From positions 1-34,481 of the forward strand of contig NEEC01000090.1 of NCBI GenBank assembly GCA_002189035.1: a stretch of DNA of 34,481 nucleotides, in the 5' to 3' direction. Every line of letters begins with the position of its first letter. Positions within the stretch are counted from its first letter, which is position 1. Below the pieces are notes generated by a model. It was not told where the DNA came from. It saw only the letters and a program-made list of their open reading frames with translations, and ran no database searches. The translations under genes and the position numbers were made by a program. This document shows positions 6,151-31,843 of this stretch, piece by piece. The stretch is from Utricularia gibba (Eukaryota > Plantae > Magnoliophyta).

Positions 6151-6799
6151 TAATGTTATGGATAAATATTATATTTTAGATTTATATTTTATGATAATAT
6201 TTGTGTAGAATTTTGGTATTCTAAAAAAAATCATTAAAGTTCATGGTCCAAGTCCCAAAATGAGTGAAACCCATTTTCCAAATATAGATCTTACGTAATT
6301 TGTATCTCTTTTGTGTGTGTGTGTTTTTTTTTTTTGTTAAATTCCCTTCTTTGGGGTGAGGAAGATTAAAATTCAAATATGGGATATCTAGGGATGAAAA
6401 CTAAGCCCAAGTTCATGGGCCGGTCCGAGCCGGTTCTAGGAAGTATTGGGCTTAGACCTGATCCAAATTTCATTGGGCTTTTGGCCGAGACCGGCCCAAA
6501 TTCCATCCATAGTGATATCATTCCGTACCCATCCCTTCACTGCCTTCCTTGCCCTTGAATATTCAAAATTGATATTGCAATATTTTTCTAAATTTTTGTG
6601 CTATGTGGCAGTAAATTTTGTAATGTACACAATATTGATATTCATTTTTCAAAAATTGTTAGCACATCATAGTGAATTTTGTAATATGCCTGTTTAAAGT
6701 GTAATTACATGAATTTTTATAGAATTATTATCATATGACGGTGCATTTTGTATGTGCTGGAATTAAAGTGTAGCGTTGTTTGCAAATCACACCTTTTGG

Positions 6800-7076
6800 T
6801 AGTATAGATTTTGCTCCTCCACCACTATATAAGTTGGTGATGAAATCAAAACTTACATATTAAAAATGCCCGAATACAAGTGGGTGAATATGGATGTCTT
6901 CAGCTGCCCTATCTGCTGAACGGCCCAATGAGGGCTCCTATCTTTACGGTAGTATTCTTTTTTTTTTTTTTTTTTGAAAAATTCTTATTAAAAAACATGG
7001 ATACTCATGCCCAGTGCAGCGAAGGCCACGTCGTCTGCAACGTGTGCGCATCAAAACTACATCGAAGACCACATCA
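6800..7076 (+). pseudogene. SINA-like RING gene copy 1b (ATG 6866; exon 1 to 6948; intron 6949-7014; partial exon 2)
   Basis: Reads MPEYKWVNMDVFSCPIC, then TGA at 6917 from a 1-nt loss, then NGPMRAPIFT|GT..CCAG|CSEGHVVCNVCASKL. The last CxxC pair is replaced by the intergenic module head. Confidence 0.8.
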
Positions 7077-8459
7077 AATCCAATTTCGGGTCAGGCTGGC
7101 CCATGCCACCTCCCGGATGCCACGTCAGATGAAACGAATGTTCAGTTAAATGCAAAGGCCCAGCCCGGTTCATAGAGATCGTAACAAATGGGCCAGGCCG
7201 TACGCACACCCAAATTCCAAAGCCAGATCCAATTCCATATTGCAGTCAACCAATAGGGATGAAAGTTGGGTCCTTACTCGCCACTTTGACCCTAATTCAA
7301 AAGACTTTCACCAAGTTTCGGGTTTGGATCCGGCTGAAACCGAATTATATATAATAATGATTAATATGTTCTTAATTTGATTATACAATGAGTTGGACTG
7401 GCCCAACGACATAAATTAATAAAACATTTTATAAAATTATTAAAACTAATATACAAATTAATATTATTTAAATAATTTATAGAAACTAATTTAACATTAT
7501 TATATGATTCATTAATACGGTGCAAAACACTAACCAAATTTGGCCACACAAATCATTAGTGTTTCACGTATCTTAATTATTACATGATATTACATGTATT
7601 ATTTCACCTATATATTTAAATTCTTAAATAAAGAAGAGTAAAATTGCAAACAAGGGAATGCATCATTACTACGACACAATATCTCTTATGTTACTTTCAT
7701 CACAAATTAAATAGTTGGAGTTTGACGATGACATCTCAAGTTATAATCAACATAAAAAATTTAATTTTCAAGTTTCAAAATTGCATTACACTTACTTTAA
7801 CTCTTTTTTTTTTCAAACAGTTTGTCCATGAACATATAAAATTACGTATTTGACCTTCCATATTTCCAAAAGTTTGACCTCTAATATTATTATAACGGTA
7901 TATCATTATAAATAATATCTACAAATATCATGATTATTACCCTTATGCTTTTACTCTTGTCAAACTTAAAAAATGACAATACGCGAATGTGATATAATCC
8001 TAACAATGGATTTTTATTTGTCGAATTTCATATGTGAAAAACCTTATTATGAATTTTTTTAGATGTAAATCAAAAGGGGCTCATGCTTGGGTATTCTCTG
8101 AATTATTTTGAAAAATTAAAGTGTGTTTTTCGAAATTGTGAAACTTGGGGATTCCAATATTTATATTGATTGAAATTTAAAGTGTTGCTTTTGCACTTTT
8201 CACTAAATTTAAAATAAAGAAGATTATATGCTTTTGCTTATGTTATATGCATGACTCTATAACAGTGAAATCCCAAATTGCAATGCTAGATCCAGTTCCA
8301 ACTCGGCCCAGCTCATGCCCAACTCAATCGTGAGATGAAAATCATAGTACCAAATACTATTGTAACCATTCTAGAATTTATGCAACACAATAACGCCATC
8401 CTTTAAATCAGTTAATAAACACGGAACACCTTAGTCGAATACAAATCCAATTCAAGTTT

Positions 8460-9350
8460 GATCAACCCAGCCCAATTTAAACTCTATAACACGTTGCCCC
8501 TGCTTTGTATCAAATGAGACCCAAATACAATGGCCCAACTCACACTATACATCTTAAAAATGGGCTAACTCAGTTGCGAGCCCATATTTCAACGCAAGAT
8601 CCAGTTCCAACTCGGCCCAGCTCATGCCCAACTCAGTCGTGAGGAATTACATAAGACCAAATATTATTTTAACGATTTTATTTTCGTTTGACTGCTTTAC
8701 ATATAAAATATTATAAGTATTTCTCATATGTTAATTATTACATGTATAATTTATGAAATATATTTAAAAATTTAAAACAAAGCAGAGTAAAAATTCCAAC
8801 GAGTATTTTATGATTACACATTATTTTTTCGGTGTTTTAGAAATATGATTATTTGGATTTTATTTCTCACACATGAATAAAAAAAAATTACATTAAATGT
8901 CCAATTTTCGCACACATATTATAGTTGGTCAGATTTATAAACATCTCATTCTTTTAATATTATATTTTTAATTCTTTTTTTTTTTTGTACTTTTGCTTCT
9001 GGTAGTTATATTTCGCAATCATATATTCTCTCAATTATATTTCATTAATTAAAATTAAAAAAAAATCAATTTACAAACTTCTAATAATAATATTATCGAA
9101 AGAAACATTCATCCGCTTATTTAAGGGACTTGAGTGATAGGATGATTAAAATCACTCATGTTCCAAAGCACATTGGAACTAATTGAATTACTTTGTTACT
9201 CTTGTAGTAGCAATGCAACGTCCTTTGGACCCAGAGGGAAGCAGAAAAATGCATCATCTATAATCAATTTATATTGATATTATTATGATGAATTAATTTC
9301 AATTATCTCAATTTATGTGAGAAATGAATTTTCAGGTATATTATTATTAT
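8460..9350. repeat. Intergenic module copy 2
   Basis: Direct repeat of 4900-5860. A ~46-bp segment (AGATCCAGTTCCAACTCGGCCCAGCTCATGCCCAACTC) occurs at both ~8287 and ~8597. Confidence 0.85.
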
Positions 9351-9449
9351 GCAATCCTGGAACAATCAATGTTATGGATAAATATTCATAGTTTACGGTT
9401 TCAGTCACATGCTCCAGGTTCCAGGTCGCACCAGAGTCGTGTCGACAAA

Positions 9450-9837
9450 GTGGGCACCTCAGAAATTTGTGTGAGCATACAACGTGTCCTTCGTACACTG
9501 GGCACGAGTATCCATATTTTTAAATAAGAATTGGTGTTTAATACAAAACAAAACAAAAATATAGTAGCGAAATTAATTCTTGTACTTCTTGTGAGGCCCT
9601 GGCAGCAGCAAAGGGGACAGTTGAATACCTTTGTATCGCAACAGAGATTGATGAATACAGAGGTGTTCAACTGCCCTATTTGCTGCTGCCAGGGCCTTAC
9701 AAGAAGTACAAGAATTGATTTCGCAACTGTATAGTTTATTTTGGGTTTAACAAAATTCTTATTTAAAAATACGGATACTTGTGTCCACTGTACGGAGGAT
9801 CATGTTGTCTGTACACAAAAATTATTGAGATGCCAAC
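9450..9837. repeat. Inverted repeat of SINA-like exon 1/intron/exon 2 (arms 9450-9636 and 9655-9837, 18-nt loop)
   Basis: Both arms encode VFNCP(L/I)CCCQGLTRSTRI, the intron, and C-x-x-x-HVVC in opposite orientations. Confidence 0.9.
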
Positions 9838-9864: not shown

Positions 9865-10300
9865 GTTTATTCAAAAAAATGAATGCTACATATTATATAT
9901 ATCTTTATCACCTCCCCCACTCTCTCTCTTACTTTTATCAAATATTGATAAAAATCTATTAATTAAATAATATGTAAAAAAGTAATACCTTCATATCAAG
10001 TTCAAATAAATTAAATTTATTTTATCATAATCTCATTAGCTAAAAACTCTTGGAACTTAAATATGTATTGTAAGTGTGGGATTGGCCAGGCCAGCCTGAC
10101 CTGAAATTGGATTTGAATCCAAGAGTTTTTAGTTAATGACATTGAACTTAAATAAAATTAATGTGAAGGTATTAATTGTTTACGTATTCTTTAATTAATA
10201 GAATTTTTATCAATATTTGATGAAGTAAGAGAGAGAGATAGAGAGAGTAGGGGAGATGATAAAAATATATATAATATTTAGTATTCAATTTTGTAATAAA
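9865..10300. repeat. AT-rich fold-back, possibly a MITE (arms ~9865-10057 and ~10118-10300)
   Basis: TCAAATATTGATAAAAAT, the CT/GA tracts and TAAAAACTCTTGGA are mirrored. No target-site duplication (TSD) was identified. Confidence 0.65.
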
Positions 10301-11404: not shown

Positions 11405-12654
11405 TTACACACTATTTTTTATTTAATACACACAAAAATTAAAATATTTAGAGTTATAAATGACCAAATGACGATGTAGTATTTGGGGTGTGAAAAATTG
11501 ATTTAATGTGCAAGATCGAAAAATACGATTATCTGATATGTAAATGATTTGATTTATCTTAATTTTAATTTTTTCATTTAAATAAATTGAATAGATTCTT
11601 TACATCAAACTAACTTGTTAATATTTATATATATTATCTGAAAACTATTTTCATTAATTAATAAAATTTAGAATATGATATTTGATTTTAATTAAATCTT
11701 TATCCTATCTACATATATATTATTTAGACTATCATATCTAAAATATGCCCCCAATATGGTTTTAGTTCAATAAATGTGATATATATTACTTATTCTAGAG
11801 TTTGTATTATCACAAAGAAAGTCCACTCTTGGCCTCCTGAATAACAATTCAATTCTATCCGATAACATTGAAAGAGATGAAGCCATGTTTATATATGGGG
11901 TACAAAAAGGGGGTCATGGTCTGTGAGATCTGTTCGCTCAAATTATCAAGATCCCCAACCTAATTGTCTATCATTATTGATACTAAGATCGGACGTGTAT
12001 TGCCCATTATACCCTTTATTGCATCAAAACCCTAAGGCAATTTTATTTATTTAATCGAAGTAGAAGGATTTTTTTGTCTTATTATTATAAACAGAGATTA
12101 ATGTTACATTATCTTAGTGGGGTTCTTCTTCCAGTGTAGATTGAGGGCATAGTGGGCATCTTCTGTGTAAATTAATATCTTTATTCTAAATATATAAGTT
12201 TAGATAATTATTTTACTTTTTATAAATAGGTTCAACCCAAAACAAAATTGAATCAAACAACCAACTGAGCCGGTTTTAAAGACACCGCCGTAGGTCTACT
12301 TTAAAATTGCATAGAGTCGTTCCCCATAGCACACGCAAAGCCCACATTAATACCCATCTTAAAATTCAAATGCAGAATGGTATCTCCTAATATGTTAGAT
12401 TTTTATAATCAACGAACAACTCTTTTTATTTACTGTCATAAAGTTGCACATATAAAATAAAGTATAAATTACATCAATAATGTATATATATTATCATTGT
12501 TTGTAATGCATAATAATTATTATGCTGAATTAAAGTAAAATTACAAAGTACGTATTACAATTTTTTCTAGAATTATTAGCACAACATTATGAGTTCTGTA
12601 ATATGAATGATTAAATTGTAATGTTGTTCAAAAAGCATTAACTTTTCATAATAT

Positions 12655-12930
12655 AGATTTTGCAACTCCAACACTATATAAGAAGCTAGGGTGATGCGAA
12701 TTGCAATTAAACCTTGTATCATAAATGGCGGAAAATGAAAGCTATATCATGACGGGAGAATTATTCAACTGCCCGATTTGATGCGAGGGCCCCATGAGGG
12801 AGGCCATCTTCTCGTTAAGAGATTTATATTTTTTATTTAGCACAATTATGAACTAATAATTTTTATTTTGAAAGTGTGGCGAGAGCTACATACTATGTGA
12901 TGCCTCCTCACTCTCGCAGTTAGACCTCAA
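12655..12930 (+). pseudogene. SINA-like RING gene copy 4a (ATG 12725)
   Basis: Reads MAENESYIMTGELFNCPI*CEGPMREAIFS with an in-frame TGA at 12779-12781. The donor is mutated to TTAAG. Exon 2 from 12875 reads CGESYILCDAS. The family TATA module is at 12675-12681. Confidence 0.85.
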
Positions 12931-12970: not shown

Positions 12971-13309
12971 AATCACGGAATTCAAGACAACGGCAGTGAT
13001 GAGGTGGCCCTAGGACAACAACATGGTACAATGGAAACCTATTTTAAAGTGATGCAGGGTAGAACTAACTTAGGTGGAGAGTATTCTGTAGGCTACGGTA
13101 CACAACCACTTGGAAGGTCCAAGCATCCGAATCAATACCAGGTAAGGCGGCGTTTTGAGGACCTTCCAGGTGCTCGTATTCCGTACCCTACAGAATACTC
13201 TCCAGCTCAGTTTGTTCGACCTCACATAACTTCAAAATAGGTTTCCATTGTACTAGGTTGTTGTTGCTATGGCCACCTCACCAGTGCCGTCGTCTTGAAT
13301 TCCATGATT
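12971..13309. repeat. Non-SINA inverted repeat (arms 12971-13120 and 13159-13309, 38-nt loop)
   Basis: Hand alignment gives about 24 differences over ~150 nt. Examples: GTACAATGGAAACCTATTTT and TGGAGAGTATTCTGTAGG are mirrored. Confidence 0.9.
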
Positions 13310-13311
13310 CT

Positions 13312-16300
13312 TGATGAGATCATGGATGCTACTGATTATTCCAATGAAGACAAAGGACACAAGATCAATAATTTTCCATTGATTTCAGTAGGGCCAATCA
13401 CTAGATCAAGAGCAAGAATGAATCAAGAATTGCTTAAGACCTTATGGGCCAATCACCCAAGCTATGAGATGTTTGGGATGGAATTCAACATTATCAAAGT
13501 GGATCAACTTGATTAGAGAAGGCCTATTACGACCAAATACATTATTATGACTACTTTGCCTCCAATAAGGCCCAATCCTTCAACTATATAAGAAGGGCCT
13601 TACTCTTGTTTTGGACAACTTTAATTGTAATCACTTTTGAGAGCAAATTCTCCTTCCTTGAGTTCTTGTACAACTTAGACTTATCAAGCTTTGCTTGTGG
13701 TGTCTAGTGTGTGGTTTATCACTCCCAATTTCTTCATTAATTCTGTGAGTGTGGTACCATTTCATAGTTTGGGTTGCAAGGATCTTTCAATCCTTGAGGG
13801 CCAACTTCTTTTTCTTGACGGATTGTTTCTTTTCAACCAAGATCTGGTTTGCCAATCATTTGTTGATTGGAGGGTCGTATCAGGTGGTATCAGAGCCAAT
13901 CTTTCTCTTCTTCATCTCTTATTTATCTTGTTTTTGTTTCGTTCTTAGAAAGAAAAAAAAAAACCAGAAACTAGTCCAGATCTATATTGATTTGGTTATC
14001 TTGTCTTTTGCTCATCTCTTCTTCTGAAAAGAAGAACCAAGGGGGGTTTCTTATCTTTGTTTCTTCCATCCTTTTCTTCTGGATTGCTGCAAAAAAAAAA
14101 AAAAAACGTGTTGAAGGGAGAAAGAAAGTTAGTAGCTGAATTTTCAACTTTTCACACATAAGAAAAGTCAAAAAAAGAAGTTAGTCATTTGAATCCATTG
14201 AATCTTCTCTTTACCAAAAAAAAGAAAAGTCAATATTGTACAACTTTGTCTATTGTCCTACTTCTATTTCATTTTAACTCTTTTCAATTGTCTACCTACC
14301 TCTTTTGGTGTTAATCACAAAAAGTTACACTCTATCTTTCCATTCCTACTCTTACTTAACCATTATTACTATTACCATCACCAAGTCTTATATTGTTCGC
14401 TTTCTTTATCCCACTCATTACTCTAGCCACCCTTATCTCTTTAAACCACACTTAGATGGATTTTTTAAGGTTTATTGAGTCTTAAAGTTAAAGAGGACTT
14501 GAGGTTTGGAAATTCTTTCTTTCTTCATTTACTTCTATCTTTCTGTCGTTGTACTCTTTCCTTCTTTTTGTCTACACTTTTCTCTTGTAGTAGGATGTCG
14601 AGCTCTAATAACCCTGCAGAAGAATCAAATGTTATGGATGTTCGTTTTGTACTTAATGCAATGCAAAGTGAGTTCAGGAGATTACAAAGATGCATGGAAC
14701 AAATCCACGTCAAACTAGAGGACCATGATGAATCTCTCAAGAACATCAAAAAGCAAGAAGAGGACAGTGTCTTCCATGGAAGAACAAGAGTTCCAACACA
14801 CCATAGCAGAAGGAATTCTCAACAAGAAAAAGATTTGGAATCTGAGGCTCAAGAGGCAAAGCATGGTGAACAAAGGAGAAACAATGACAACATCCCTGAT
14901 GAGTATGATTCATCTAGTGGTGATGATACAGAACGAAGATGTCAAAGAAATTGGAGGCCAATTCGTGGTGTGAGATATGATGAAAGACCCAGGGGTAGAC
15001 ACACACGTGAATACAAGGAATTTGATAACATCAAGATGAAAATCCCTTCTTTTCAAGGGAAAAACGATCCAAATGCCTACTTGGAATGGGAGACTCGTGT
15101 GGAGCATGTGTTTGATTGTCACAACTATTCTGCAGTCAAGAAGATCAAGCTTGTTGTTGTTGAGTTTACAGATTATGCCATAACTTGGTGGGATAAAGTA
15201 GTACTCAACAGAAGACGAAATGATGAAGAACCAATTCGCACTTGGGCTGAAATGAAGAGGATCATGAGAAAAAGGTTCATTCCCAGCCATTACCAAAGAG
15301 ATCAACACCAAAACTTGCAGAAGCTCACCCAAGGGAGCAAAACCGTGGAAGAATATTGGCAAGAAATGGAGGTGTTAATGATTCGAGCCAATATAATAGA
15401 TGATAGGGAAGCTACAATAGCAAGATTCCTCTATGGTTTAAACAAGAAAATCTCTCAAGTGGTCCAGTTGCAACACTATGTGGAGATTGAAGACATGTTG
15501 CATGTTGCAATAAAGATTGAAAAGCAACTAAAGTCTAAGGGACAACATAGAGACCATCCAAAACCTTCTACCTCGTGGAATGTTGCTGGAAGTAAGGAGA
15601 AGAAACCAAATTATCCTTCATTTGGGAAATCAACCAAGTTTGGACCGATGAAAGAGGGCACTTCAGATACTCGAAACCAGGAAAGAGTATTTAAGTCTTC
15701 TGGACCAACACGAAATATCAAGTGTTTCAAATGTCTTGGCCATGGTCATATTGCTTCGGAATGCCCAAACAAGAGGACCATGATTCTAAGGGACTCTGGA
15801 GACGTTGAATCTGATGTTGAGTGTGAAAGTAGAAGTGAAGTACAGGAGATAGATGATGGGGAACAACAACCTGTCATTGGTGAAAGTTTGGTAACAAGAA
15901 GGACTTTAGCCATGGATGCTAAGTCAATGGAGGAGCAACGAGAAAACTTATTCCATACACGTTGCTTTGTGAATGGGAAAGTTTGTAGCCTAATAATCGA
16001 TGGAGGCAGTTGCGCAAGCGTTGCTAGTGTTCTCATGGTGGATAAACTTCATCTTCCTACTCTTAAACATCCAAATCCCTACAGGCTTCAATGGTTGAAC
16101 GAAGGGAGCGAAATAAAGATCACTAAACAAGTTCTTGTTGCTTTCCAAATTGGAAAGTATCAGGATGAGGTTCTTTGTGATGTAGTGCCCATGCATGCTG
16201 GACACATACTCTTGGAAGGCCGTGGCAATACGATAGGAAGGTGATCCATGATGGCTATACTAACAAGTATTCCTTTTCTATGAAAAGAAAACAAAATCAC

Positions 16301-17329: not shown

Positions 17330-17720
17330 CCCTAATTACCATCTTTGGCCATTGCACTGATACAAGGTTTAATTTCATCACCCCAGCTTCTTATATAGTG
17401 TTGGAGGAGCAAAATATATATTATGAAAAGTTAATATCTTTTGAACAACATTACAAAATTCACTATGATATGTTAATAATCTTGTAATATATACTTTGCA
17501 ATTACAATTTAACTAGGTACGTTACAAAACTCATATTGTTGTGCTAATAATTCTAGAAAAAGTTGTAATCTGTGTTTTGCAATTATAATTTAATTCAACG
17601 TATCACACAATTTCCATGATTGTTTAAAAATTACTATTTAATTCGTTTTACATGAGGAATTGTTCATGGTAAAAGTTATATTAAATTTTATTACTACACA
17701 ACATAAAATCATTAGATACA
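17330..17720 (-). pseudogene. SINA-like copy 4b: promoter and start codon (ATG 17352) only
   Basis: The reverse complement matches 12450-12730 (GCTCCTCCAACACTATATAAGAAGCTGGGGTGATG...AAACCTTGTATC). Coding homology stops after a few codons at a TAG. Confidence 0.7.
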
Positions 17721-18340
17721 ATTTATTTGTTCTTCATTTTCTCATACAGTAAGTACTACATAATATGGTTGGTTAACGTAAAATGAACCAAAATCATCTG
17801 AAACATAGCTAGCATTGAGATGTAAATATAAAGTATTAACTATAATTTATAATAATATACAGCATACATTATGTCTGAAATGTACAAAAGTTCGTCATAT
17901 ATTAACTATTACATGAAATGATTTATCGTATATAATTACAAATTTTAAATCAATGATGATTGAAAATTCAAACACGTATGTACGCAATATTATGCACTGC
18001 TTTTTTCTTATATTATGTCCTTTAGTGTTATCAAAATAATTTTTGGATATTTTTACTGATATCAGTTATTATTTATAGTCAAATATTCTCATATTTTCCC
18101 CCATGAATTGATTGCAAAAAATGATTCATTGAAAGAATTTTGAGAATATTATTTTAGAAAGAATAATTCATCTACTTATTTAAGAGACTCGTTACATAAC
18201 ACAAGCCAATATATTAAATCTCTTTGCTTCTCCAGGGTATATCATTATTATACATGATGTTGCCATATACTTTACATTTTATTATGATAAATTCTTGGTT
18301 TAACTAAATGATTCTTATAACACAATAAAATACATAGAGT

Positions 18341-18802
18341 AATTAATCTAATGATATGTTATTCAACACGCCTGGAGGAGGAGGACGACGAAGAGGGTCT
18401 TCCTCGAAAGTGGGCGACTGGATGAGCTGCCGAGACCTACAGCAAATCGGGCCTCCGCAGAAGGGACATAGTGACAATCGTTTTTTTTTTCAAATACAAT
18501 TCATGCAAGTAAAAAAAACAAAAAACTACTGAATAAATTAGACCCGTCATGGACCCATTGTAGATGATAATAGTGCCCTTGTATGCTACTATGGGTCTCG
18601 AATTTATTCAGAAAGTATTTTTTTTTTTACGTAATATGAATTTTATTTGGAAAGTCCTGTGTACTGTCACTATGCCCGGTTCTGGCGAGGCCGCCCGATT
18701 TACTTGGACACGGAGCGGGTCATCCAACGTCAACCGCTTTGGAGGAAGACCTCCTCGTCGTTCCCCTCCTCCAGACGTGTTGAATAAACAATTAGATTAA
18801 TT
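18341..18802. repeat. Inverted SINA-like intron/exon 2/3' end pair (arms ~18341-18545 and ~18591-18802)
   Basis: The minus arm encodes LCPFCGGPICCRSRQL. GAGGAAGACC...CCTCCAG(G/A)CGTGTTGAATAA and CTGAATAAATT..GACCC are mirrored. Confidence 0.85.
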
Positions 18803-18959
18803 CTTGTATGATTACTATATGTATTTTATCTGACCGCGTAAGTTAAACACAATAATTTTCAATTTCTTTTTCTTTCATCAATTAGTATTATAAAATTATA
18901 ATAATTTCCATGTAATATTTATTAATCTTGTTTTTGTTTATTAGGACGGCCCCGAGGCG

Positions 18960-19205
18960 CCTTTGTCTGTCCTCTATGATGTGCTCCATGTCACGGCACC
19001 TACAAGACAGTGGCCCACAACATTGTGGGCATCTTTCAAGTTTGTGGCCTTCCGCACACTTCCACAAACATACATATTCTTTCTGGAAGTGTCCGGAAGC
19101 CCACATTGTGTGTGACGCCACAAACTGGAAAGATACCCACACTGTTGTGGGCTACTGTACTGCACGTGCCGCCACGTAGAGCACCTCATACAGGACAGGC
19201 AGACG
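18960..19205. repeat. Inverted SINA-like exon 2 pair (arms ~18960-19062 and ~19083-19205)
   Basis: Minus arm: CAEGHKLERCPQCCGPLSCRCRDMEHII. Plus arm: CPEAHIVC, then a frameshift, then HKLERYPHCCGLLYCTCRHVEHLI. About 15 mismatches in 85 nt by hand. Confidence 0.9.
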
Positions 19206-20224
19206 GGTCATTTAGAAAAATGGACATCTTTCCCACCTATATTATAACATTTTTGAAATCTATTTTTATTTTTCAAAATTACTTTTAAAAAGTAGAAATA
19301 AAAAGTAAAATTAACTAACTCCTTACTTTTCCAAAAATAATTTTTGTAGTTATAATTTTAAAAGTGTTTTTGATAAAATTACTTTTCGAATTAAAAGTAT
19401 TCTAGAACAAAAATATTTTTATTTTTGAAAAATATAAATAAATTTTAAAAATTTTACAGAACACTGTTTAATTCAAAATTTTTACACATAAGTTTACCAC
19501 TTTTCTACAGTGACTACTTTTCTAAATCACTCCACGACAGACACGCTGCGGCAAAATGCGCCTCGCGACCCTCCTAATAAACAAAAACAAGACTGATAGT
19601 TTTATATTTATTATATTAAATTAACATATTTTGCAAGGCACCCCCGGCCCATCGACCTAGTGTTTGTTTAAAAGAATATTTTATAAAATAAATTATTTAA
19701 TTTTTAAATATTGATTTTAATCAACTAATTAATATAAATAAATAAATTAGTATAATTCTCATTGTCTATAAAACATGTAATGTGATTAATCAAAAATTAA
19801 TTAAAATCATCCAAAGACAAAAAGTATAAAAAATATTTATAGATAAATATTTAATTTTTTTATTTAAAAAATATGAAAACAAGACTGGTCAATTTTCTAC
19901 ATTGCATTTTATGGTCCTAAGCCCAATCAATACTGAGCATATGGGTGTCGGGCCGAAAAGCCCTATAGATTCTAGAATCGGGCCAGATCAGCCCATAGAT
20001 TCGACCTAAACTTTCATTTATACTAGCCATCCATCGTATTTGAAATCAGATGTATTGACCGTTGTACTCTTTATCAAAACCCTAGTGCAATCCTTATCTC
20101 AGTTGAAGGATTTTTTTGTCCATCCTCAACAGGTATTTAAACCGACCTAATCAGTAAAATTAATGTTTATGATTATTTATATACTACCTTTTCTGATATT
20201 GTTCCTTTTGTATTATAAAAATAT

Positions 20225-20950
20225 TTTTTTGATATTTTTACAGTCAAATATTCTCTGGATTTTCAATTGAATGCAAAAGATGATTCATTTACCTAACTTT
20301 GAGAATAGTATTTTAGAAAGAAGAATTCATCTACTTATTTAAGATATTCGTTTCATAATATAATGCATGTCAATCTATCAAATGTCCTTGCGGATCATCC
20401 TCTTTCAAGGGTTGGCATCATCTTCTTTCAATTAGCTGAATTTCTGGTGGAGATTAACGGTTATTATGCAAGAATGTGCCATTATTGTGCATTTTATTAT
20501 GATAATTTCTTGATTCAACTAAATGACTCTAATAACATGATAAAATGCAAACAGTAATTAATCTAATAAATAGGTTATTCAAATCGGGCGGGCCCGGGAG
20601 AAGGGGCATGGAGCGGGGTTTTTTTTAAAAAAAATATCCACTATGTTTTGATTATATTAGAAATTTAACTATTCTACGTGTATTTTTTTGTGCTTAATGT
20701 ATGAAAGAAATGAACAGTGAGTATTTTTTAAAAACACCCATGGAGCGGGTCATCCCAGTCAACCCCTTCCCAGGAAGACTTTTCTCATATTCCTCCTCCT
20801 CCATCAGATTAATTTTTGCATAATTAATTACTCAATTAGTATAAAAAATGATCACACAAATATTAACCTTACCGCCTAAGTTAAAACATAATTTTCAATT
20901 TCTTTTTCTTTCTTCAATTAGTATTTTAAAATTATAAGAATTTCCATAAT
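20225..20950. repeat. Direct, degenerate duplicate of ~18060-18915, including a decayed fold-back at ~20560-20810
   Basis: Shared strings AGTCAAATATTCTC, TTCATCTACTTATTTAAG, GTAATTAATCTAAT and AATTTTCAATTTCTTTTTCTTTC.TCAATTAGTATT. Confidence 0.8.
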
Positions 20951-21150
20951 CCCTCACACAATCCAATCAAAAATGATACTTTATACCATCCTATTTGTTG
21001 CCCATTCTACCCTCCATGAAAACCCTATTGCATCATATCTGAATGGGTATCATTCTCATCCGGTTTATACGGATTTATGTTATGATAATTAACTAATTTT
21101 ATTTACCACTGAAAATTAAATTCTCAGGTATATTATTTTACAAATACGAC

Positions 21151-21512
21151 TTAATCATTCTTTTGTTTGTCGGTGTCGGGGACTGGGGGAGGAGCCGGAT
21201 CTCCATCTCCATCTCCCTCGAGAATAGACCGAAATATCTTTTCCAGGTCTGAACACCTGCAACAGATTGGTCCCTTACAGATTGGGCATTTTACAATTTG
21301 TGGAAGCATGGCTCACACACAATAATCTCTCCTTCTCCGCACTGCATTCAATTTATTTTTTTTCTTAAAAATAAATATTGGTAATTAAAACAACAAATAA
21401 AATAAAACCAAAAAAAGGTTACCGAGAAGATGGGCCCTCTGATGGGGCCGACACCGCACGCCGAGCAATTAAAGAGGTGGGCAGGGACATAACATAGCTT
21501 CTTTTTCTCCAT
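21151..21512 (-). pseudogene. SINA-like RING copy 8 (exons 21512-21423 and 21341-21151) with one frameshift
   Basis: Reads MEKKKLCYVPAHLFNCSACGVGPIRGPIFS|CGEGEIIVCEPCFHKL, then TAA at 21293-21291. The shifted frame continues KCPICKGPICCRCSDLEKIF...KND*. The family promoter module is at ~21535-21580. Confidence 0.75.
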
Positions 21513-22959
21513 CTTGTTCATACGAGTTTTCATTTCACCAACAACTTATTATATATCGATGGAGGACCAAAATCTATGTTACGAAAATATGTGATTTACG
21601 GACAGGATTACGCTTTAATTAAGAACGCGCTATCATATTATAATAATTCTCGAAAATGACATTGCGATATTAACGGTGCGTATTGTAAAGTCAGGGGTCT
21701 GATTATGATATACTACATTAATTACAGATGAAGGAATTGATGTGGTTAAATAGAGAGATATTTTGAATCTTTTACTAAGGACTTTTTCTTAAAAAATAAT
21801 AACGTACAACTATAAAGATTTGATTTTTGAATTAAATAATATCATATAAAATAAGTATGAATCATTATGTTGATATCAGACTAAAATCTGGGTGTGTATC
21901 AATAGTGGGACAACAGAGAGAATTAAGTCTATGAGTATATTTCAATTATCACACATTGATTATAGATCGGTACGTGATTAATGAGTAAAAATTTTACTAA
22001 TCTTATATGAGACATTTTCTAAAAAAGATAAAAAAAAAACGTAAAATCATGAGGGTTGAATGGTCAATACACATAATATTGTGAAAAGTAATTGTAGTTG
22101 GTGACATGCATGGTGCAATATGTATCAATTTTGATTATTGGAGGGCAAAGACCCCCACCCCCTATTCCTTACCTCGGGCGAAGGCCCATAAAGAGGAGCC
22201 GGTCCAGGAAACGTATGGGCTTGTTCCATGGTGAACCCATTCCCCGGCCCAAAGCTTGAGATGAGACACCTCTTTGTAGAATAGAATGCATGATAATTTT
22301 TTTTATAATTTTTTAGAAATGTATTTAAAATTATAACATGGAAAGAGAATTAATGCAGCTCATGTCCCGATTATGCAATTTAAACAACAACCATTTTTAT
22401 GTATTAAAAAATAATCATTATTGATTTTTCAGAATTGTACAAAAGGTAGTCCTAACTGCCACGAACAAATCCGTACGGGTAAAAACCTAAAACAGCGGCC
22501 TGTCGCCCCCCGGATTCGCATTCTGGGGGATGGACGAAGATGCCACCCCACCCACCCAAGAAACGACACCGTTTCTGGAAGCATCGATGGCGGAGGACGA
22601 CGACACTGTTGGTTACAGTTCATTTACCCATGATATGATGATTCTTCGGCAAATGGTTTGGCGTATTTGTGTAATTAAGAAGATGTTGGGAGGGTAATTC
22701 CTTGAGGAAGTTCCGAATTCCCCTGCAACTTGCGCACCCCACTTGCTCGAAACCGCCTGACAATGGAAAAGCGAGGGCGAGAAACGCAGAAAAATCTTCA
22801 TGATGTTTGCTCTGCAACTATTCGGAGATATTTTCTCTTCTGCCGGTTCGTATACTTTGTCTGTTCTTCGTGAATCGCTCATAGGATTCATCGACTGTTT
22901 TCTTGTAGACGCTTTTCCCCAGGTTCCTCGGCCACAAATAAAGAAGAAGAAGCATAAGA

Positions 22960-23633
22960 ATGCCGTCTTCTCTGCAGATTCAGAGGATTAGCTCCAGGAG
23001 CCCTCGCTTCACGGACCGCCTGGATCTCATGTGGGTTTCTCCGATTTCCCCTGAAATTCCCCTGCCGGATGATGTTCGCCGCCGTCACACTCACCTGGTA
23101 CTGTCTGATTTCGTTTTGATTGATTTCCGCCTCATACGGGTAACCCTTTCTTAATCATGTGCCGTTTCTAGGTAATGGAAAACCAGTGCTGCTCCGCGGT
23201 GGTGCAGGCGATCGATGCCCCTATCGAGATCGTGTGGTCCTTGGTGCGACGATTCGACAACCCACAAGCGTACAAGCATTTTCTCAAAAGTTGCCGAGTG
23301 GTTCACGGCGGCGGGGAGGTGGGTACTGTAAGGGAGGTGACGGTCGTCTCCGGGTTGCCGGCGGGGAGGAGCACGGAGAAGCTGGAGATTCTGGATGATG
23401 AGAAGCATGTGATGAGTTTCAGAGTCGTCGGCGGCGATCACCGTCTCCGGAACTACCGGTCCATCACGACACTCCATGCGGCGGGAGCGGCCGCGACGGT
23501 GGTGGTGGAGTCGTATGAGGTGGATGTGCCGGAAGGGAATACGGTAGAGGAGACTCGTGCCTTTGCGGATACGATCGTGAGATGCAATTTGCAGTCGCTT
23601 GCTCAGATCTCTAGAAGTTTGCTCACAAATTGA
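22960..23633 (+). CDS. PYL4: PYR/PYL/RCAR ABA receptor, subfamily II (PYL4/5/6-like); exons 22960-23097 and 23172-23633, 199 aa
   Basis: Gate SGLPA, latch [20 protein letters not shown] and CNLQSL are present. The N-terminal [10 protein letters not shown]...RRHTHL joins VMENQCCS in frame through a 74-nt GT..AG intron. Assignment to a specific paralogue is approximate. Confidence 0.9.
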
Positions 23634-24539
23634 ATTTTCAATATATATATATTTTTTTGCCAGGCTGTTTAATCCTCATTATCGCATTAAATAGCCGCTT
23701 AATACTTCAAAAACAAAAAAAACTAAAAGCATTTTCCTTTCTAATTAAAGGCATTATGTTAATAAAAAAAATTTTATTATCTAAATTCTTTCTTCAAAAT
23801 GAGAAGTATTTTTGTTGAGGAGGCAAATGCCCAACAGTCATCATAAAGCCTTCCATCAAAATGGACCAGGTCGCAAATTAGGGTAAAGCCCAGTTCGAAC
23901 AAGTACGAATATTTATACGTTTTTTATATTATATATAAAATAACCATTATCAGATCAAAATGGGCTGGGCCACCGATGAAAAAGAGTGATCAGCGTGGCC
24001 CAATACGCAAATTTTCAATTTCTGTTTTTTCGGTAAATTATTATTATAATTTGATATCAATTTGGATCGATTCCGGCAACAATACAATGAAAAAAGCATT
24101 AGTGCAACTTGTTTTAGTATGATTTTCTTGGTTAAATTCATGAATTTTTTTATAATGAATTAAAAAAATATAAATCTTATATTTAATTAATTTTTTTATA
24201 ATGAAATACAATTTGCTTCTCAACAATAAAAATGAAATAATGTTTGAGAAGAAACTTGTAGTAATGAGTTTCTGGTTTTCTTTAAAAAAAAAACTAAAAT
24301 ATTAATTATAATAATTCAAAAATAAAGAATAAATTGTGGTTTTTATTTATTTTGTAGGCAACCCTTGTGCTGGGCACAGAAAACACAACCTACCATCAAT
24401 GTTTTTTAAAGCAACTATGTAAATGGGGCCGTGAGAATCAAAAAATGCACCAAGTATTAACTATTGCCAATACCTAGCTGCCACTAACACGTACGTACGG
24501 GTAAAACACAGGTTCGGGTCGGGTCGGCCGACATCTCAG

Positions 24540-24917
24540 GTTCCGCCGCCGTGCGTTCTCGCAGGAGTGAGCAACCAGTCATGAGAATAAGCTCTAGAAC
24601 AAGGCGTCACCTTAAAAAAAAACATCGCTACCATAAATCTCATCAGGCAAAGATATATCAGGAGGATATTCTTTCTTCTTGCGTATTGCCATCTCTTTTC
24701 CTAGTTCCTCCTCCAATTCGAAATCTCCGGCGACCCCGTTCAACAGCATCTCCAACTTTCTCCTGCTCAACGATTGAGAAGACCAAGGAGCCATCAAATC
24801 TCCAGCTCTTTTCCCCTTCGAATACAAAACATCATCATTACCGACGATGACCATGAACCGCCGCCGTCGACGCAGTGAAGGGGGGTGGCGCCGCCGGAGC
24901 CGGAAGCTCTGTTGACA
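24540..24917 (-). pseudogene. Internal fragment duplicated from the ANK-CCCH gene (parent ~29630-30085)
   Basis: [27 protein letters not shown] and KKKEYPPDISLPD, plus DNA matching [10 protein letters not shown] and ENARRR, with several deletions and frameshifts. Confidence 0.9.
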
Positions 24918-25718
24918 TCAATAATATATATTAATTATTATTTATTTGTCATGTGTGGTTACAAATTCTGACTCAAAGTAGGTTGAAAATTCAAATGTGT
25001 ATTCATGACTACATATTATTATTATTTTTTACTTGTAGTCTATGAATTTGGAGACAGCAAAGTGGAAGCGATGTAACGTTCATTATAATTGATTCGATAT
25101 TCGAAAACGTAAAAAAAAATTAATATAATGATATGTATATTATTAGAATTAAATAAAAAAATTCATATTAGATTCAGGAAAAGAAATATATTATTTAATA
25201 GATAATATCACGCTTAGAAGCATTTTAAAGGAGACCAAAAGTGGAGACCATTATGGATTAAGAAGATTTGTAACATCATAATTATTTATTGCATGTATTT
25301 TCCATGCAAAAGAATCGATTTTATTGAAATTTGGATAATAATATTGTGGTGAGAAGGATTCATCCCCTTATTTAAGTGACTTAGCGCAAGGCATTATGGG
25401 AATTAAGAATGCACTAGAATACCATCCAGTTTGTGTCTTCTTGGGATTATTCTCAATTCTTCTTAACACCATCCTCCTTCCAAAGGCAGGCAAGTAGATG
25501 GAGGTTCATGACGGATGATCAATTTTCTAAATGACGCTATATCATTCTCACTCAATTTTACAAAGTAGTACTATTCATTCATTCATTTTTTCTTTATTGA
25601 TAAAAATATTAATTTTTTGTTGGTTTGGTGTTATTTGAAAAGCATAGGTTGGGTGTAGAAGCAATATTTGGTTCTTGTATATATTATCAAGTACACACAA
25701 ATATTTGTACAATTTTTA

Positions 25719-26070
25719 CTAATCTTGCTTCTCTTTGTGGGCAGCTGGAGGACGAGACCGCGACGTCGCCTTGGGTTCGAAGCGCGTCGTTTGGAAAAGC
25801 GCTTCGAAATGCCTGCATCTACAGCAGACGTCCTCTCCGCAGAAGGGGCATCTCCCTAACTTCTGCGAACACGGCCCACACAGAATGTGGCCGTTCATGC
25901 ACTGCCAAAAAAAAAAAAAAATTAAGAACACATACACTTGATTTAATAGAAACACAGCAAAACAAACCCAAAAAACTTACGGAAAAGATGGCCCCTCTGA
26001 TGGGGCCGTCACAGCAGATCGGGCAGTTGTACATCTTCATGTCAGCCTCGATTAATTTGTATTCAGCCAT
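25719..26070 (-). CDS. 90-aa SINA-like RING-HC-only protein, copy 9a (exons 26070-25981 and 25901-25719)
   Basis: Intact ORF across a 79-nt GTAAG..GCAG intron, identical to copy 9b. It lacks the upstream TATA module. Confidence 0.7.
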
Positions 26071-26187
26071 TTACTCTCTGGTACAGTGTTAAATTTCATC
26101 AATTACTTCATTTAATATTATTATACTTTAAATTGTTTCAAGTATGAAGAATTAGGCTACATGAAAATTAACGTGATTTGGAGGGAA

Positions 26188-26203
26188 TATGTATGTATGT
26201 ATG

Positions 26204-26239
<36 letters not shown>

Positions 26240-26275
26240 TGTATGTATGTATGTATGTATGTATGTATGTATGTA
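26188..26275. repeat. (TATG)n microsatellite, ~20 units
   Basis: Read directly; it lies in the spacer of the 382-bp inverted repeat. Confidence 0.95.
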
Positions 26276-26517
26276 CATGCACTTCTACACCCATCACATC
26301 ACCTCATTCATGATCCTCGAATAATCAAATCGCAAATTGCATGTTACATATTTTTCTTGAATTATTATCAGAATTTTGAAATTTCCAGAAAATTGATTTT
26401 GCAAATATTTCTAAGTCATTATCAATTTTTTCTAGAATTATTATAATCTCAGGTGAATTTTGTAATATGTGTAATTAAAGTGCAATGTTGTTAAAAAGCA
26501 CGACTTTTTCATACTAT

Positions 26518-26565
26518 AGATCTTACTTCTACAACTCTATATAATAAACAAGCTGGTGATGAAAT
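26518..26565 (+). promoter_or_regulatory. Family core promoter/TATA module of the SINA-like genes
   Basis: TAGAT(T/C)TT..TCC...CTATATAA...TGGTGATGAAAT lies 20-70 nt upstream of the ATG. Homologues occur at ~6110-6150(-), 6805-6845(+), 12655-12700(+), 17375-17420(-) and 21535-21580(-). Confidence 0.7.
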
Positions 26566-26587
26566 TTAACACTGTACCAGAGAGTAA

Positions 26588-26939
26588 ATGGCTGAATACA
26601 AATTAATCGAGGCTGACATGAAGATGTACAACTGCCCGATCTGCTGTGACGGCCCCATCAGAGGGGCCATCTTTTCCGTAAGTTTTTTGGGTTTGTTTTG
26701 CTGTGTTTCTATTAAATCAAGTGTATGTGTTCTTAATTTTTTTTTTTTTTTGGCAGTGCATGAACGGCCACATTCTGTGTGGGCCGTGTTCGCAGAAGTT
26801 AGGGAGATGCCCCTTCTGCGGAGAGGACGTCTGCTGTAGATGCAGGCATTTCGAAGCGCTTTTCCAAACGACGCGCTTCGAACCCAAGGCGACGTCGCGG
26901 TCTCGTCCTCCAGCTGCCCACAAAGAGAAGCAAGATTAA
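26588..26939 (+). CDS. 90-aa SINA-like RING-HC-only protein, copy 9b (exons 26588-26677 and 26757-26939)
   Basis: MAEYKLIEADMKMYNCPICCDGPIRGAIFS|CMNGHILCGPCSQKLGRCPFCGEDVCCRCRHFEALFQ...KQD*. The pattern is C-x2-C-x11-C-x3-H-x2-C-x2-C-x6-C-x2-C with the SINA-type CxxGH, and the intron sits at the IF(Q/S)|C position seen in plant SINA-like genes. Confidence 0.8.
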
Positions 26940-28681
26940 ATATTGTATAATTATACAAAATAATTTATTATACTTTATTGTAAAGAAGGTGAATTAGCGA
27001 TGGTGTTAAGAATTAAGGAGCCCCAGCCCATCACAATTTTCAATTTCTGTTTTATCGGGAAATTAATATTATAAATTGATATCAATTAAATCAATCCAAC
27101 GAAAACCAGAAAGATGAATAACACAATCCACTCAATCCTGGCCCTCCATTACCGCGAGATGTTTCCCTCAATGAAAATCCTAGTGCAACTATACCTACTT
27201 CATGTGAGTCCAAGGCCTCGACGAGTGTTTTAAAATAATGGGTTTTTTTTTATGAATTCAATTTAACAATTTTTATATAAATCGAAAAATTATTTAAAAA
27301 AATTAAAAATATTACATTTAATTAATCTTATAATTTGCTTCACCACAATTATTTCGTCTTGTTATGAAAATATGAAATATGAATAAAAGGAAATAGTTGG
27401 CGAAAAGAAAATTGTTCTAATCAGATTCTGTGAGCAATATTTTAAAAACGTGTTCAATTCATGATTTGAATTAGTGATCCCTACGGTTAAATTGGATTCC
27501 TTAATTTTTTATTATATACAATAAAAATAATTGTTTAGACAAACCGTTATTTTAAAATATGGACGGCTGTAGTCGTTAACTTTCTAGTCATAGAATGGTA
27601 GTGGATCATTGATACGAACCCAATTTCACGTTCGGCCCGATCCACCTAAAGAAGGCCCACCGTAAAATCCATAGAGCCGTTGGATGACGTAATTATGGGA
27701 TGAGCCCTTCCTTTGCATAAACCCCGTCTGCCACTTGAATACGGATTGATGTACGTGCATAGTCGATACTTGTGATTAGAACACGCAAAAACAAATTCAA
27801 AAATTTTGGTGAACTGAAAATCCCAAGGAAAATTGAGAATACTCAGATATGCCAAATAAATTGATCTAATTAAAAATGAATGAACAAATGTAACAAACAT
27901 CAATATAACAATATTATTCATTTTAGATATTTAATTTTCATTGTTTTATATTTGGTATTTTCAATTTTCATCCTCAAATTACTCTAGATTAAATATATTT
28001 AATTTTGAAATTCCTATCAATAACTTTTCACCATACTCAGAAAATAGATCTCTGCATAGTCATTTTATTCAATTTTATCATTTCTCATACATGAATTCAC
28101 TTAGACCATCCTTTCTCGTGCAGGGCATCGGATTCGAAGCATGAATGATTGAGGCCTAGTTCGATATTTCTATAAATAAGTTTAAACAATGTAGAACCAA
28201 AATTAGTTTTTTTATTAAATAATAAATCTCACATTCTAATAAATCATGGAGAGGAGGAAGCTTCCAACTGCCAATTCATGGGATAACCCTAATAATGTAC
28301 ACGTGTTTAGTATTAGGATGGCAGGCTGGACCCCACCTAAGTAAACATGTCGACACATTAGATGACATTAAAATCTAATTAAAAAGTGAGAATTAATTAG
28401 TATTTAAGTGTAATTATTATAGATGAGAAGATAATAGTGAGAAAATAAGGAATATGAATAAATGGAATAATTTTTTAAAAGAAGATTTTAGTAATCGAAT
28501 TTATATCGTGGCTGCTTTCTAAAACAATAATTCAATGAGAAAAAATAAATCAGCTTGGAGGTGGCGCGGCCGGTTAGTTCCCGGGATGACGGCGGAGGCC
28601 ATGATGATCTGCTTACGCGGCTGCTTCCGCCGCTCTATTTACATTTCTCGACGTGCCACCATGTTATCAAGGGGGTCTCCT

Positions 28682-30393
28682 TCACCAGTAGACTTCTGGG
28701 TCATCCATGTTCGGAGTCAGCATTGTGTTTCTGGCGTGAAATCCATTCTCGCTACGGATTCCGAAAGATGGAGATTTCTTGAGCTTAGTCGCATCGTCGC
28801 CATTGAATCGCCAGTCCAGCTTCCCATCCGGAGATCCCCACTCGGATGGAATTGAGTGCACGGGGGAATTGGCTGAGCATGAGAGGGAATAGCGGCCGGG
28901 ATCGATGAAGCTCTGACTTCGTTTGGACAGAGCTGAAGATCTTGAATTCAAGATGGCGGCCGCCATTGCTGAGGAAGAGTCGAAAGCATAGTTTCTTGGT
29001 TGTGCAGATGAGATGCTTGAGGGAAAGCTCGATCGGAGGTGGTTCATGTTCTGCCGGTATGCTGGAGATTGCACCTGAGGGGACGAGTTGGAGCTGAATT
29101 TTGGAGATAATCCCTGCATCTGTGAGATCAGAGACTGGTCATACGAACCAAAAAGTTCATCAAGATTGCCTTGCTTCAGCTCTCCCCCAGCTCCCATTCT
29201 GCTGTATGGAGAAGAGATGTTCCCCATTTCCTCGAATCCCAGAACTTTCATATCTAAATCCGCATCCCTTGCACTCAGGGTCGCCTTCAATCGGCTCCCC
29301 GGAAGCTGCAGAGCCGGAGGAGTGGTATTGATCTTGCTCTGCCAGAGCGAACCCCTACGATCGGAGACGAACCTGGTGAACCAAGAGGCAGTTGACTCAA
29401 ATCCAAACCAGTAGAGGCGTACGACTGCCGGAGCTCTTCGGGCTTGTGAGCGAAGAAGCAAACTTTCCTCGAGCAACCAGTTTCATCCTTACAGAGACGT
29501 GTTCTGTATTGAGCGGGATGAAGCCATGATTCGAAAACACCATGAGCATATTCACAGTTGTCTCCTTTCACGCAAGTTCCCTTCTTGAATTCAGGACAAG
29601 GAACACAACTATAATGATACTTCCTCAGATCCCGGCGCCGTGCGTTCTCGCCGGGGTGAACAAACGGACACTCCGTCCAGTCATGAGAATAAGCTCTAGA
29701 ACAAGGCTTCACCTTAAAACTGTACATTCTGAACTCATCAGTGCCATAAATCCCATCGTTTATATCAGGCAAGGATATGTCAAAAGGATATTCTTTCTTC
29801 TTCTGTATTGCTATTTCTTCTTCTGCTTCCTCCTCCTCGTCCAATTCGCAATCGCCGGCGACCCCATTCAACAGCATCTCCAACTTTTTCCTGCTCAACA
29901 ATTGAGAAGACCTTTTCACACAAGGAGCCATCAAATCTCCAGCTCTTTTCCCCTTCAAATCCAAAGCGTCAACATCACCCGCGGCGTTGATCAGAATATT
30001 AACGACCTCCAAGGATGACCACGAACCGCCTGCGGCGGCGCAATGAAGGGCGGTGGCGCCGTCGGAGCCGGAAGCTCTATTGACATCAACTTTGCCTGAT
30101 TCAACTAAATATTTGAGAATCGATAAGCTCCCATATAAAGACGCAACCATGAGAGGGGTTCTTTCTTCAAACCCCATCCTGTTTGAACCTAACCTTCTAC
30201 AGTACCAAAATCCCATTTCATCTAAAGAAGAACCCATCTCGATTTCATGGAGAAACCCTGACAGATCATCAAACGCAGCTAATTCAAGCAAAACAGTGCA
30301 ATATTTCCGAGCTTCTCCCCCTTGTTCAACTTGAAATTCAGCCTCCATCTCCGAATTATAACCGTTGCTTTCACTCTTCCCACCTCCACACAT
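28682..30393 (-). CDS. Ankyrin-repeat tandem CCCH zinc-finger (TZF; C3H29/C3H30/C3H66-like) protein, with a frameshift at ~29352-29355 in this sequence
   Basis: [86 protein letters not shown], then in the second frame [13 protein letters not shown] and [10 protein letters not shown]. The ATG at 30393 follows a 5'UTR intron acceptor at 30400. Confidence 0.9.
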
Positions 30394-31843
30394 GAGAATC
30401 TGGAACGGAAACAAGGAATCGAAAACTAATCACCGCCATATCTACAGCAAAACAAAAAAATCGAAAATTTCCATACAAAAGAAAATCCCAGTTGCCCAAA
30501 AAGGTCTACAGGATCAAAAATAAAAACCCAGATCACAAAAACAAGAATTGACGACAAGTCGCCGAGAAACAAACAGGGAAAACAAAACCCACCTCAACTA
30601 CCAACCAAACAACTACGCACAAAAAAACGGAATCTGAGAAACCAAAAGCTTCGCCCTTCTCACCTCTCACCAACGAAGACTAAAAGCTCTGAATCTACCA
30701 CGAAAAAAGCTTTGAACAGAGAATAAATGCCCCGATGTTCACACCTTCACAGTGCAGCCCAAGTTTGAGAAAAAAAAAAGCGAAGACTTTAGAGGTACGC
30801 GTGAGAGGGGAAGGGCGACTTTTCCTCTCCATTTCTTTATTTTAATGCCGGTTTCCTCCTTTTTTTTTAATAATATTTTTAATACCTTTCTATCCTAGAA
30901 AATTTTGAAAAGTCTTTCCTTCCTAGGAGTAAAATTTTATTTTATTTCATATGGCCCTTTGGATATTAATAAAAATTCAAAAACACTTCCTTTTCCATTC
31001 CACAAAGTACACGAGTTCCATTAATCCTTATCATTAATTACTAAATAAGATACTTTCTATAAAAATCTTGCACAAGATTCGGATAAACTTTTTGCATGTA
31101 TTGTTGATTCTGACGTCAGCATCATGTTTCTGTCCAAACTTGGCAAAGGGATAAGAATTGAACAATGGACCGACCATGTAGAGTTTGTAATTTTGGCTGT
31201 CGTGGCATTTTATTTCGTATTTTGAGAAGCAATAAATAAAGAAAATGATTTATTTAATTAAATTAAACACCTCCCAAAATGGGGTATAAATGATTATAGA
31301 TAAGATTTTCTAAAAATGAAATATTGGTTAAATGTAGTTATTAGAAAATGAAGTGCGTCGAAAATTACTAGACAAACACCATTTGGGTTTGACAACTTTA
31401 GTCAAAAATGGACGGCGAGGGAGACCACGAAATGGACGGCTGCAGATCGGGTCACTTTTGCTTAACGGATTCCATCGCACGCATGCATCTTCCATCATAA
31501 TAAAATTATTATCATCATGACCCCTCATCTCCCCCGACTTTTACTTTTCCTCCACACACGTTTTTAAATTTTATAATATAATTTACGTTACTTATTATTA
31601 GTAATTAAAAAATGATAAAAATGGAAGACATGGTGATTCGAAGAATGAATGATCAATAATTAGGTTGTAATAAGTTTTTAAAGTTTATATTAAAATTGTA
31701 TAACTAATTCCATAGGATTTGAATGAGAATGATTGTAATTTTAAAATAATAATAGAAATGGCTTTTAATTTTTTTAAATATAAACAATTTTTGTAAATTC
31801 CGGGTTCTAGAATGTACGCTCATCTCTTTGGTTAACAAGGAGG

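Follow-up and report, generated by a model that had tools for sequence, protein, structure and literature searches.

Two copies of a two-exon mini-gene, each predicted to encode a small protein with a RING of the SINA type, stand head to head in the arms of an inverted repeat, and this structure, in which a truncated E3 paralogue occupies a small palindrome whose arms have been homogenised, is clearly delimited and stands confirmed. A working gene for a RING-only protein under purifying selection may survive in the right copy, and possibly in the left one too, housed in the surviving unit of a local array; we put the probability of this reading, which is built on sequence comparisons, at roughly 0.45. 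Coordinates refer throughout to the window, i.e. the whole stretch of 34,481 nt (34 kb) that was analysed, and the features are collected in Table 1.

Table 1. Coordinates of the mini-gene pair, its arms and spacer, the surrounding array and the neighbouring genes in the window
Feature	Coordinates	Strand	Remark
Left copy, exon 2	25719-25901	-	same 60 codons as right copy; TAG at 25719-25721
Left copy, intron	25902-25980	-	same as the right copy's
Left copy, exon 1	25981-26070	-	same translation as right copy
Left arm	25720-26101	-	from 31 nt of 5' leader to second base of stop codon
Spacer	26102-26556	.	455 nt, unique; separates the 5' ends of both genes
TATA-like TATAATAATA	26116-26125	-	14 nt upstream of left arm, outside family block
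(TGTA)n microsatellite	26180-26275	.	in spacer half expected to hold the left copy's family promoter
Family upstream block of right copy	26418-26556	+	67-74% identical to other copies
Right arm	26557-26938	+	perfect inverted repeat partner of left arm
Right copy, ATG	26588	+	start codon intact
Right copy, exon 1	26588-26677	+	30 codons (MAEYK...AIFS); RING ligands 1-2
Right copy, intron	26678-26756	+	79 nt, GTAAGT...T15GGCAG, 27% GC; GT 26678-9, AG 26755-6
Right copy, exon 2	26757-26939	+	60 codons (26757-26936) and TAA (26937-26939); ligands 3-8, 39-aa tail
Array pair	6030-6231 with 6644-7071	- with +	not intact
Array pair	9436-9637 with 9654-9833	- with +	not intact
Array copies/fragments	about 11.0-11.4 kb and 11.9 kb		not intact
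Array copy	12537-12834	+	not intact
Array copy	17357-17605	-	not intact
Array copy	18367-18483	-	not intact
Array pair	18972-19049 with 19119-19241	- with +	not intact
Array copy	21090-21656	-	not intact
Array element remnant left of pair	24926-25412	+	colinear with 5162-5611, 8726-9131, 17897-18189
53-nt array element right of pair	27035-27087	+	recurs at 24010-24062, 92% identity
Ty3-type gag	14475-16244		ORF
PYL4-like ABA receptor	23175-23633	+	ORF; at most 80% identical to collection proteins
Ankyrin/CCCH zinc-finger gene, C3H29-like	28682-30414	-	best match Genlisea aurea (75%), then other Lamiales
Kinase	31.8-34 kb		ORF

A two-exon gene for a predicted RING-only protein

The 30 and 60 codons of either copy would together give a predicted product of 90 aa with a single SINA-type RING. 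All eight zinc-binding positions of the RING are occupied (C16, C19, C31, H35, C38, C41, C48 and C51) in the SIAH-like spacing C-x2-C-x11-C-x3-H-x2-C-x2-C-x6-C-x2-C, and a C-R-x-x-E-x-hydrophobic stretch follows the RING, as in SINA proteins. The original prediction had credited both copies with intact splice sites and eight RING ligands, and had placed the stop about 40 aa past the RING. Both statements were borne out, as the two copies translate identically across a GT..AG intron and the stop falls 39 aa after the last ligand. In comparisons with Pfam the sole match of exon 2 was Sina_RING (PF21362; model positions 15-35 of 35, E 4.6e-5), and exon 2 alone scored 23.9 bits, under the gathering cut-off of 29.3 bits because only half of the RING domain sits in this exon; exon 1 alone gave no Pfam match. 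Over 21 aa, exon 2 moreover matches the RING of a full-length SINA protein with 67% identity, and since it is residues 61-81 of that protein that align, exon 1 would cover the first half of the RING. Taken together, these matches support a product that would be a RING-only derivative of the SINA-type RING, and they appear to be best explained if the mini-gene descends from the 5' portion of a gene for a SINA-type E3 ligase, where the RING is encoded.

The substrate-binding part of SINA ligases was looked for in stop-to-stop segments of at least 35 aa, taken on the gene's strand within 1.7 kb to the right of the right copy and within 2 kb to the left of the left copy. Comparison of these segments with Pfam revealed neither the SINA zinc fingers (PF21361) nor the TRAF-like substrate-binding/dimerisation domain (PF03145) downstream of either copy: all ten right-hand segments and the ten left-hand ones that were compared matched no SINA family, and the one real match was a CCCH-finger fragment. 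When a full-length SINA protein served as probe against the whole 34-kb window, the match was confined to residues 60-81 in its RING, with no better E value than 0.27 elsewhere. The absence of both domains, claimed earlier for the product itself, thus applies downstream of the copies and anywhere in the window, and no exon that could supply a SINA domain lies within reach of the pair, the next gene to the right being the CCCH gene on the opposite strand. With zinc fingers and TRAF-like domain absent, the predicted product has at most one of the three domains that define SINA proteins, and as two of the three fail, we class it as a RING-only derivative and not as a SINA family member.

Perfect arms around a unique spacer

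A repeat search and blastn both delimited an inverted repeat with arms of 382 nt that are 100% complementary, in keeping with the identity claimed for them, down to the T15 tract of the intron (26737-26751 in the right copy). Within these arms the two genes are divergent, with their 5' ends facing the spacer, and the identity between the copies begins 31 nt ahead of the ATG and runs up to the stop codon. The arm breaks off behind the second base of this codon, which leaves the left copy with TAG.

The upstream regions of the two copies differ. On the right, the family upstream block has counterparts in the copies at 6.7, 12.6, 17.4 and 21.6 kb (6704-6853, 12554-12689, 17364-17561 and 21525-21656) and ends in ...CTCCAAC.CTATATAA; the TATA box TATATAATAAA lies at 26538-26548 and the right arm begins 8 nt 3' of it, precisely the kind of breakpoint, just 3' of the TATA box, that the sequence had suggested at first reading. 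It had also been proposed that only the right copy retains the family promoter, and indeed 26418-26556 is common to these four other copies and the homology of the left copy goes no further than 26101. Nothing matches the next 190 nt upstream, (TGTA)n run included. Given the TATA-like TATAATAATA 14 nt from the left arm, the left copy need not be silent. Among the paralogues, conservation is highest in the upstream block (67-74% identity), ahead of the exons (50-70%) and the intron (49-55%), and copies with a dead coding part are no exception.

The pair lies in an array of broken copies

By tblastn and sensitive blastn we found no fewer than nine additional copies or fragments of the mini-gene in the 34-kb window, all of them broken. 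In the 21-kb copy the reading frame shifts and meets a premature stop within the RING, and a His has become Glu; the 12.7-kb copy suffers from an in-frame stop within C-P-I-*-C, and the 6.8-kb copy from a 1-nt deletion after C-P-I-C and the loss of its last Cys pair, and the remaining copies are partial fragments. The pair is therefore the sole unbroken unit of the array within the window. Older pairs, with arms 71-79% identical, are recognisable at 5959-6143 with 6998-6804 and at 9450-9837, 12971-13309 and 18333-18810, the latter three being reduced to tight hairpins. These copies are best explained as a lineage-specific tandem array of head-to-head pairs of the two-exon mini-gene.

Homology between the intact unit and the 21-kb copy extends over 26428-26996 (59% identity), and both end at the same aligned GATTAA. 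Since the stop position is common to the intact unit and to a pseudogene that has diverged this far, the RING-only design is ancestral to the array; judged from this alignment, the short form was already present in the common ancestor of the copies and is not a recent truncation.

Non-coding parts of the unit recur as well. In addition to its close match, the 53-nt element to the right of the pair has weaker copies at 9268-9312, 18854-18906 and 20887-20942, always in the same orientation. A repeat of about 900 nt (4860-5725 and 8398-9258, 77% identity) precedes two of the pairs and appears to be a non-genic part of the array unit. Another self-complementary palindrome at 9866-10300 (73% over 467 nt) adjoins the 9450-9837 hairpin.

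Origin of the arm identity

The arms of the intact pair are far more alike (100%) than those of the other pairs in the array (71-79%), around a spacer that is unique. The original prediction had tentatively explained their identity by gene conversion between the arms of an older palindrome or by a very recent copy. One of the two is indeed needed to account for the difference from the other pairs, and the comparison does not decide which. Its further claim that the flanks still share diverged homology is not supported: local alignments of the first 60-300 nt beyond the arms were matched or beaten by those of 4-50% of shuffled sequences. The 14-mer GATGGTGTTAAGAA is real (25460-25473 on the minus strand and 26999-27012 on the plus strand; E 0.01 in a comparison of 1 kb with 1 kb), isolated and at unequal distances from the arms.

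More telling is the remnant at 24926-25412, which is colinear with the element that borders the left member on its left in other units (5162-5611, 8726-9131 and 17897-18189), so that the ancestral unit had a left member in this position. On this sequence evidence, we consider it somewhat likelier that the right copy recently replaced an old left member, or vice versa, than that the inverted duplication arose de novo, and colinearity within the array suggests that the palindrome may be older than the identity of its arms. A recent de novo inverted duplication is nevertheless a real possibility, because the immediate flanks show no significant homology and the left copy is without the family promoter. 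In the replacement scheme, the arms would have been made identical recently, through arm-to-arm gene conversion or through replacement of the old left member. The substitution rate of Arabidopsis is about 7e-9 per site per generation; at this rate, the 0 differences over 2 x 382 = 764 nt would place the homogenisation within about 0.2-0.6 million generations.

Two other origins were rejected. A transposon (foldback element, MITE or Pack-MULE) does not fit because the bases flanking the arms, AATTTTTAC versus AATATTGTA, form no target-site duplication and because the units share colinear flanks like tandem duplicates. A retrocopy is ruled out by the retained intron.

Palindromes with gene conversion between their arms are known from primate sex chromosomes and from the W chromosome of Salix. 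As in those cases, the mini-gene pair combines over-similar arms with a unique spacer and genes within the arms, but its arms are tiny (382 nt) and the identical tract comprises the leader, coding sequence and intron of one gene. The locus offers a small, datable case of arm homogenisation in a plant palindrome, beside sister pairs at all stages of decay.

Selection, decay and other explanations

To gauge how long an unselected copy would stay open, neutral decay was simulated with substitutions only and for each exon separately, and the start, the frame, the splice dinucleotides and the eight ligands were scored. The probability of still being intact was 2.5% at 10% substitutions, 0.4% at 15% and 0.06% at 20%. 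In the non-coding upstream block the intact unit differs by 26-33% from its nearest paralogues, and survival of an intact gene by chance is unlikely. It is against this result that the pair has to be weighed as a non-functional relic, an untranscribed or useless fragment that is still open by chance and that, as the youngest product of the fold-back and duplication that gave the array its form, is due to decay. We regard such a relic as unlikely, though worth serious consideration: every other copy in the window is dead, no relatives turned up in the protein collections, the left copy has no family promoter, and the identity ends sharply at both arm ends without homology in the flanks, as in a fresh duplicate. 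The exons are, furthermore, not better kept across the paralogues (50-70% identical) than the non-coding upstream block (67-74%). Against the relic stands the fact that, despite a non-coding divergence of about 30% from its nearest paralogue in the window, the pair has acquired no disabling change, an outcome with a probability of about 0.4-2.5% under neutrality; if the genome had a closer, functional donor elsewhere, the relic could be upheld only by granting function somewhere. The CpG content of the pair also resembles that of live genes, with an observed/expected ratio of 1.10 in exon 2 compared to 1.17 in the PYL gene, 0.88 in the CCCH gene and 0.50-0.57 in the dead hairpins. Finally, pN is below pS in comparisons with the paralogues (pN/pS 0.26-0.56, for short segments picked by tblastn similarity and with pS saturated). 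We accordingly favour a working gene over a relic for the right copy, within the tentative bounds given at the outset.

A different use of the palindrome would be as a hairpin-RNA locus, where a read-through transcript folds and Dicer-like enzymes cut it into siRNAs that silence the mini-gene family or the parent SINA gene. Read-through RNA would indeed form a perfect 382-bp stem (minimum free energy -877 kcal/mol), the array holds pairs that have collapsed to tight hairpins (9450-9837, 12971-13309 and 18333-18810), and the inverted-duplication model for the birth of MIR and hpRNA loci is established in plants (PMC3237417), with partial inverted repeats of ARR17 yielding small RNAs in poplar (PMC9636151, PMC7465354). 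Like hpRNA/MIR progenitors and Populus ARR17, the mini-gene pair is an inverted duplicate of part of a gene and could give a long perfect hairpin, but its copies are arranged head to head with the promoter between them, and both ORFs are intact. As the sole recognisable promoter lies within the spacer and points outward, both transcripts would have sense polarity, with no pairing between them. Neither arm matches another copy in the window exactly over more than 16 nt, so that no target is visible there, the high CpG content argues against long-standing RNA-directed methylation, and a search of Rfam returned no known RNA family. All this makes a hairpin-RNA locus improbable. Least probable of all, in our estimation, is that the identity of the arms is an artefact of assembly or polishing, the arms being merely similar in reality or one of them being a chimeric fold-back. 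The exact identity does extend to the mutable T15 run, polishing could mask a few differences between the arms, and the frame switch near 29354-29407 in the neighbouring CCCH-ANK gene could be an assembly indel. Nevertheless, arms of 382 nt that lie in unique flanks around a unique 455-nt spacer with a microsatellite are unlike a fold-back read chimera, and the stop codons differ (TAG versus TAA), from which it follows that the arm boundaries are real sequence junctions.

What a RING-only SINA derivative might do

If the mini-gene is expressed, its product could dock an E2 via the RING and could neither bind SINA substrates nor join SINA dimers; it would then act as a competitor for the E2 of full-length SINA ligases, or as a minimal ligase in need of a partner. 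The dimer interface of SIAH/SINAT proteins lies in the C-terminal domain. Because this domain is missing, the microprotein route of dimer poisoning is an unlikely one for the mini-gene product, by analogy with these proteins. The plant SINAT/SINA-like RING E3 ligases (Sina_RING, Sina_ZnF and TRAF-like Sina) have a RING of the same sequence type and ligand spacing, but they measure about 300 aa and possess zinc fingers and a substrate/dimerisation domain, whereas the mini-gene product measures 90 aa and has neither. SINA families expand by local tandem duplication and decay to pseudogenes, as in the wheat 3B cluster (PMC10734943), and RING-less SINA proteins (Arabidopsis SINAT5/SINAT6, SINA2) compete with full-length ligases (PMC10734943, PMC6048857). 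These proteins are also truncated family members, but they have kept the SINA domain and lost the RING, and the mini-gene is the reverse: as it keeps only the RING, competition would be for the E2 and not for substrate.

Plant microProteins such as LITTLE ZIPPER, miP1a/b and OsPEL (PMC12696372) offer a second comparison. The mini-gene product is likewise small, single-domain and related to a larger multi-domain family, so that it agrees with microProteins in its single-domain size and relation; by contrast, microProteins retain an interaction domain that poisons their relatives, and the mini-gene product has no SINA dimerisation region. We found no paper on RING-only SINA derivatives in the literature, and surveys of SINA proteins would miss such forms because members are defined by the SINA domain. 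SINA ligases control hormone, stress, autophagy and symbiosis pathways in plants, and a RING-only form, if selected, would be the natural modulator opposite to the RING-less forms, one that meets the E2 and not the substrate. A bolder scheme, which we rate as a long shot, would turn the locus into a self-regulating module derived from one E3 fragment: in a birth-and-death array, the gene for a RING-only, E2-binding mini-protein would be kept in two copies by palindrome conversion, and small RNAs from the hairpins of dead pairs would tune the survivor or the parent SINA ligases.

Database relatives and neighbouring genes

A word-based search among 5.8 billion clustered proteins, run with exon 2, gave no match at all, and phmmer found no plant relative of about 90 aa among 1.84 billion representative proteins (ten matches with E<1e-3, nine of them examined). 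Most of the nine were long or repetitive proteins of animal appearance with generic RINGs of the SINA type; three were unrelated repeat proteins. Four database proteins (P0002, P0006, P0007 and P0008), animal-looking as well, contain two to three tandem SINA-type RING modules and no SINA domain; elsewhere, therefore, RING-only SINA modules do occur as repeats. Neither the unspliced ORFs nor neighbouring ORFs retrieved a record in exact look-ups, and a PDB sequence search gave no significant match. In a metagenome scan, only two marine contigs had SINA-type matches. On one of these (L001, ORXF01000198) an intronless gene at 2821-3774 encodes the full-length SINA/SIAH-like protein of 317 aa, with Sina_RING and Sina_ZnF, whose RING was aligned with exon 2, and its RING motif CMNGHILC is identical to that of the mini-gene; on the other (L002) the same 21 residues were matched at 67%.

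The ORFs of the window are those of a flowering plant, and the matches of the CCCH protein, to Genlisea aurea first and then to other Lamiales, place it in the mint order, probably near Lentibulariaceae, with no closely related genome represented in the protein collections. Neighbouring genes were used as anchors for an orthologous locus, and none was found: their best relatives are 75-80% identical (Genlisea, Lamiales, Solanaceae), and with relatives this distant and a Genlisea contig of 2 kb, no synteny could be read. The PYL4-like ORF has just 152 aa, and its homologues of 200-225 aa align from residue 54, so that about 50 N-terminal residues are, by this alignment, missing or unrecognisable. 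The CCCH-ANK gene reads in two frames, which correspond to residues 1-362 and 380-608 of its homologue, and the switch between them, near 29354-29407, reflects either a short intron or a frameshift, which may be genuine or an indel of the assembly. The stretch 24515-24934 on the minus strand is a degenerate and frame-broken fragment of this gene, with 74% nucleotide identity to 29624-30089; it lies to the left of the palindrome and is oriented like the full gene to the right of it.
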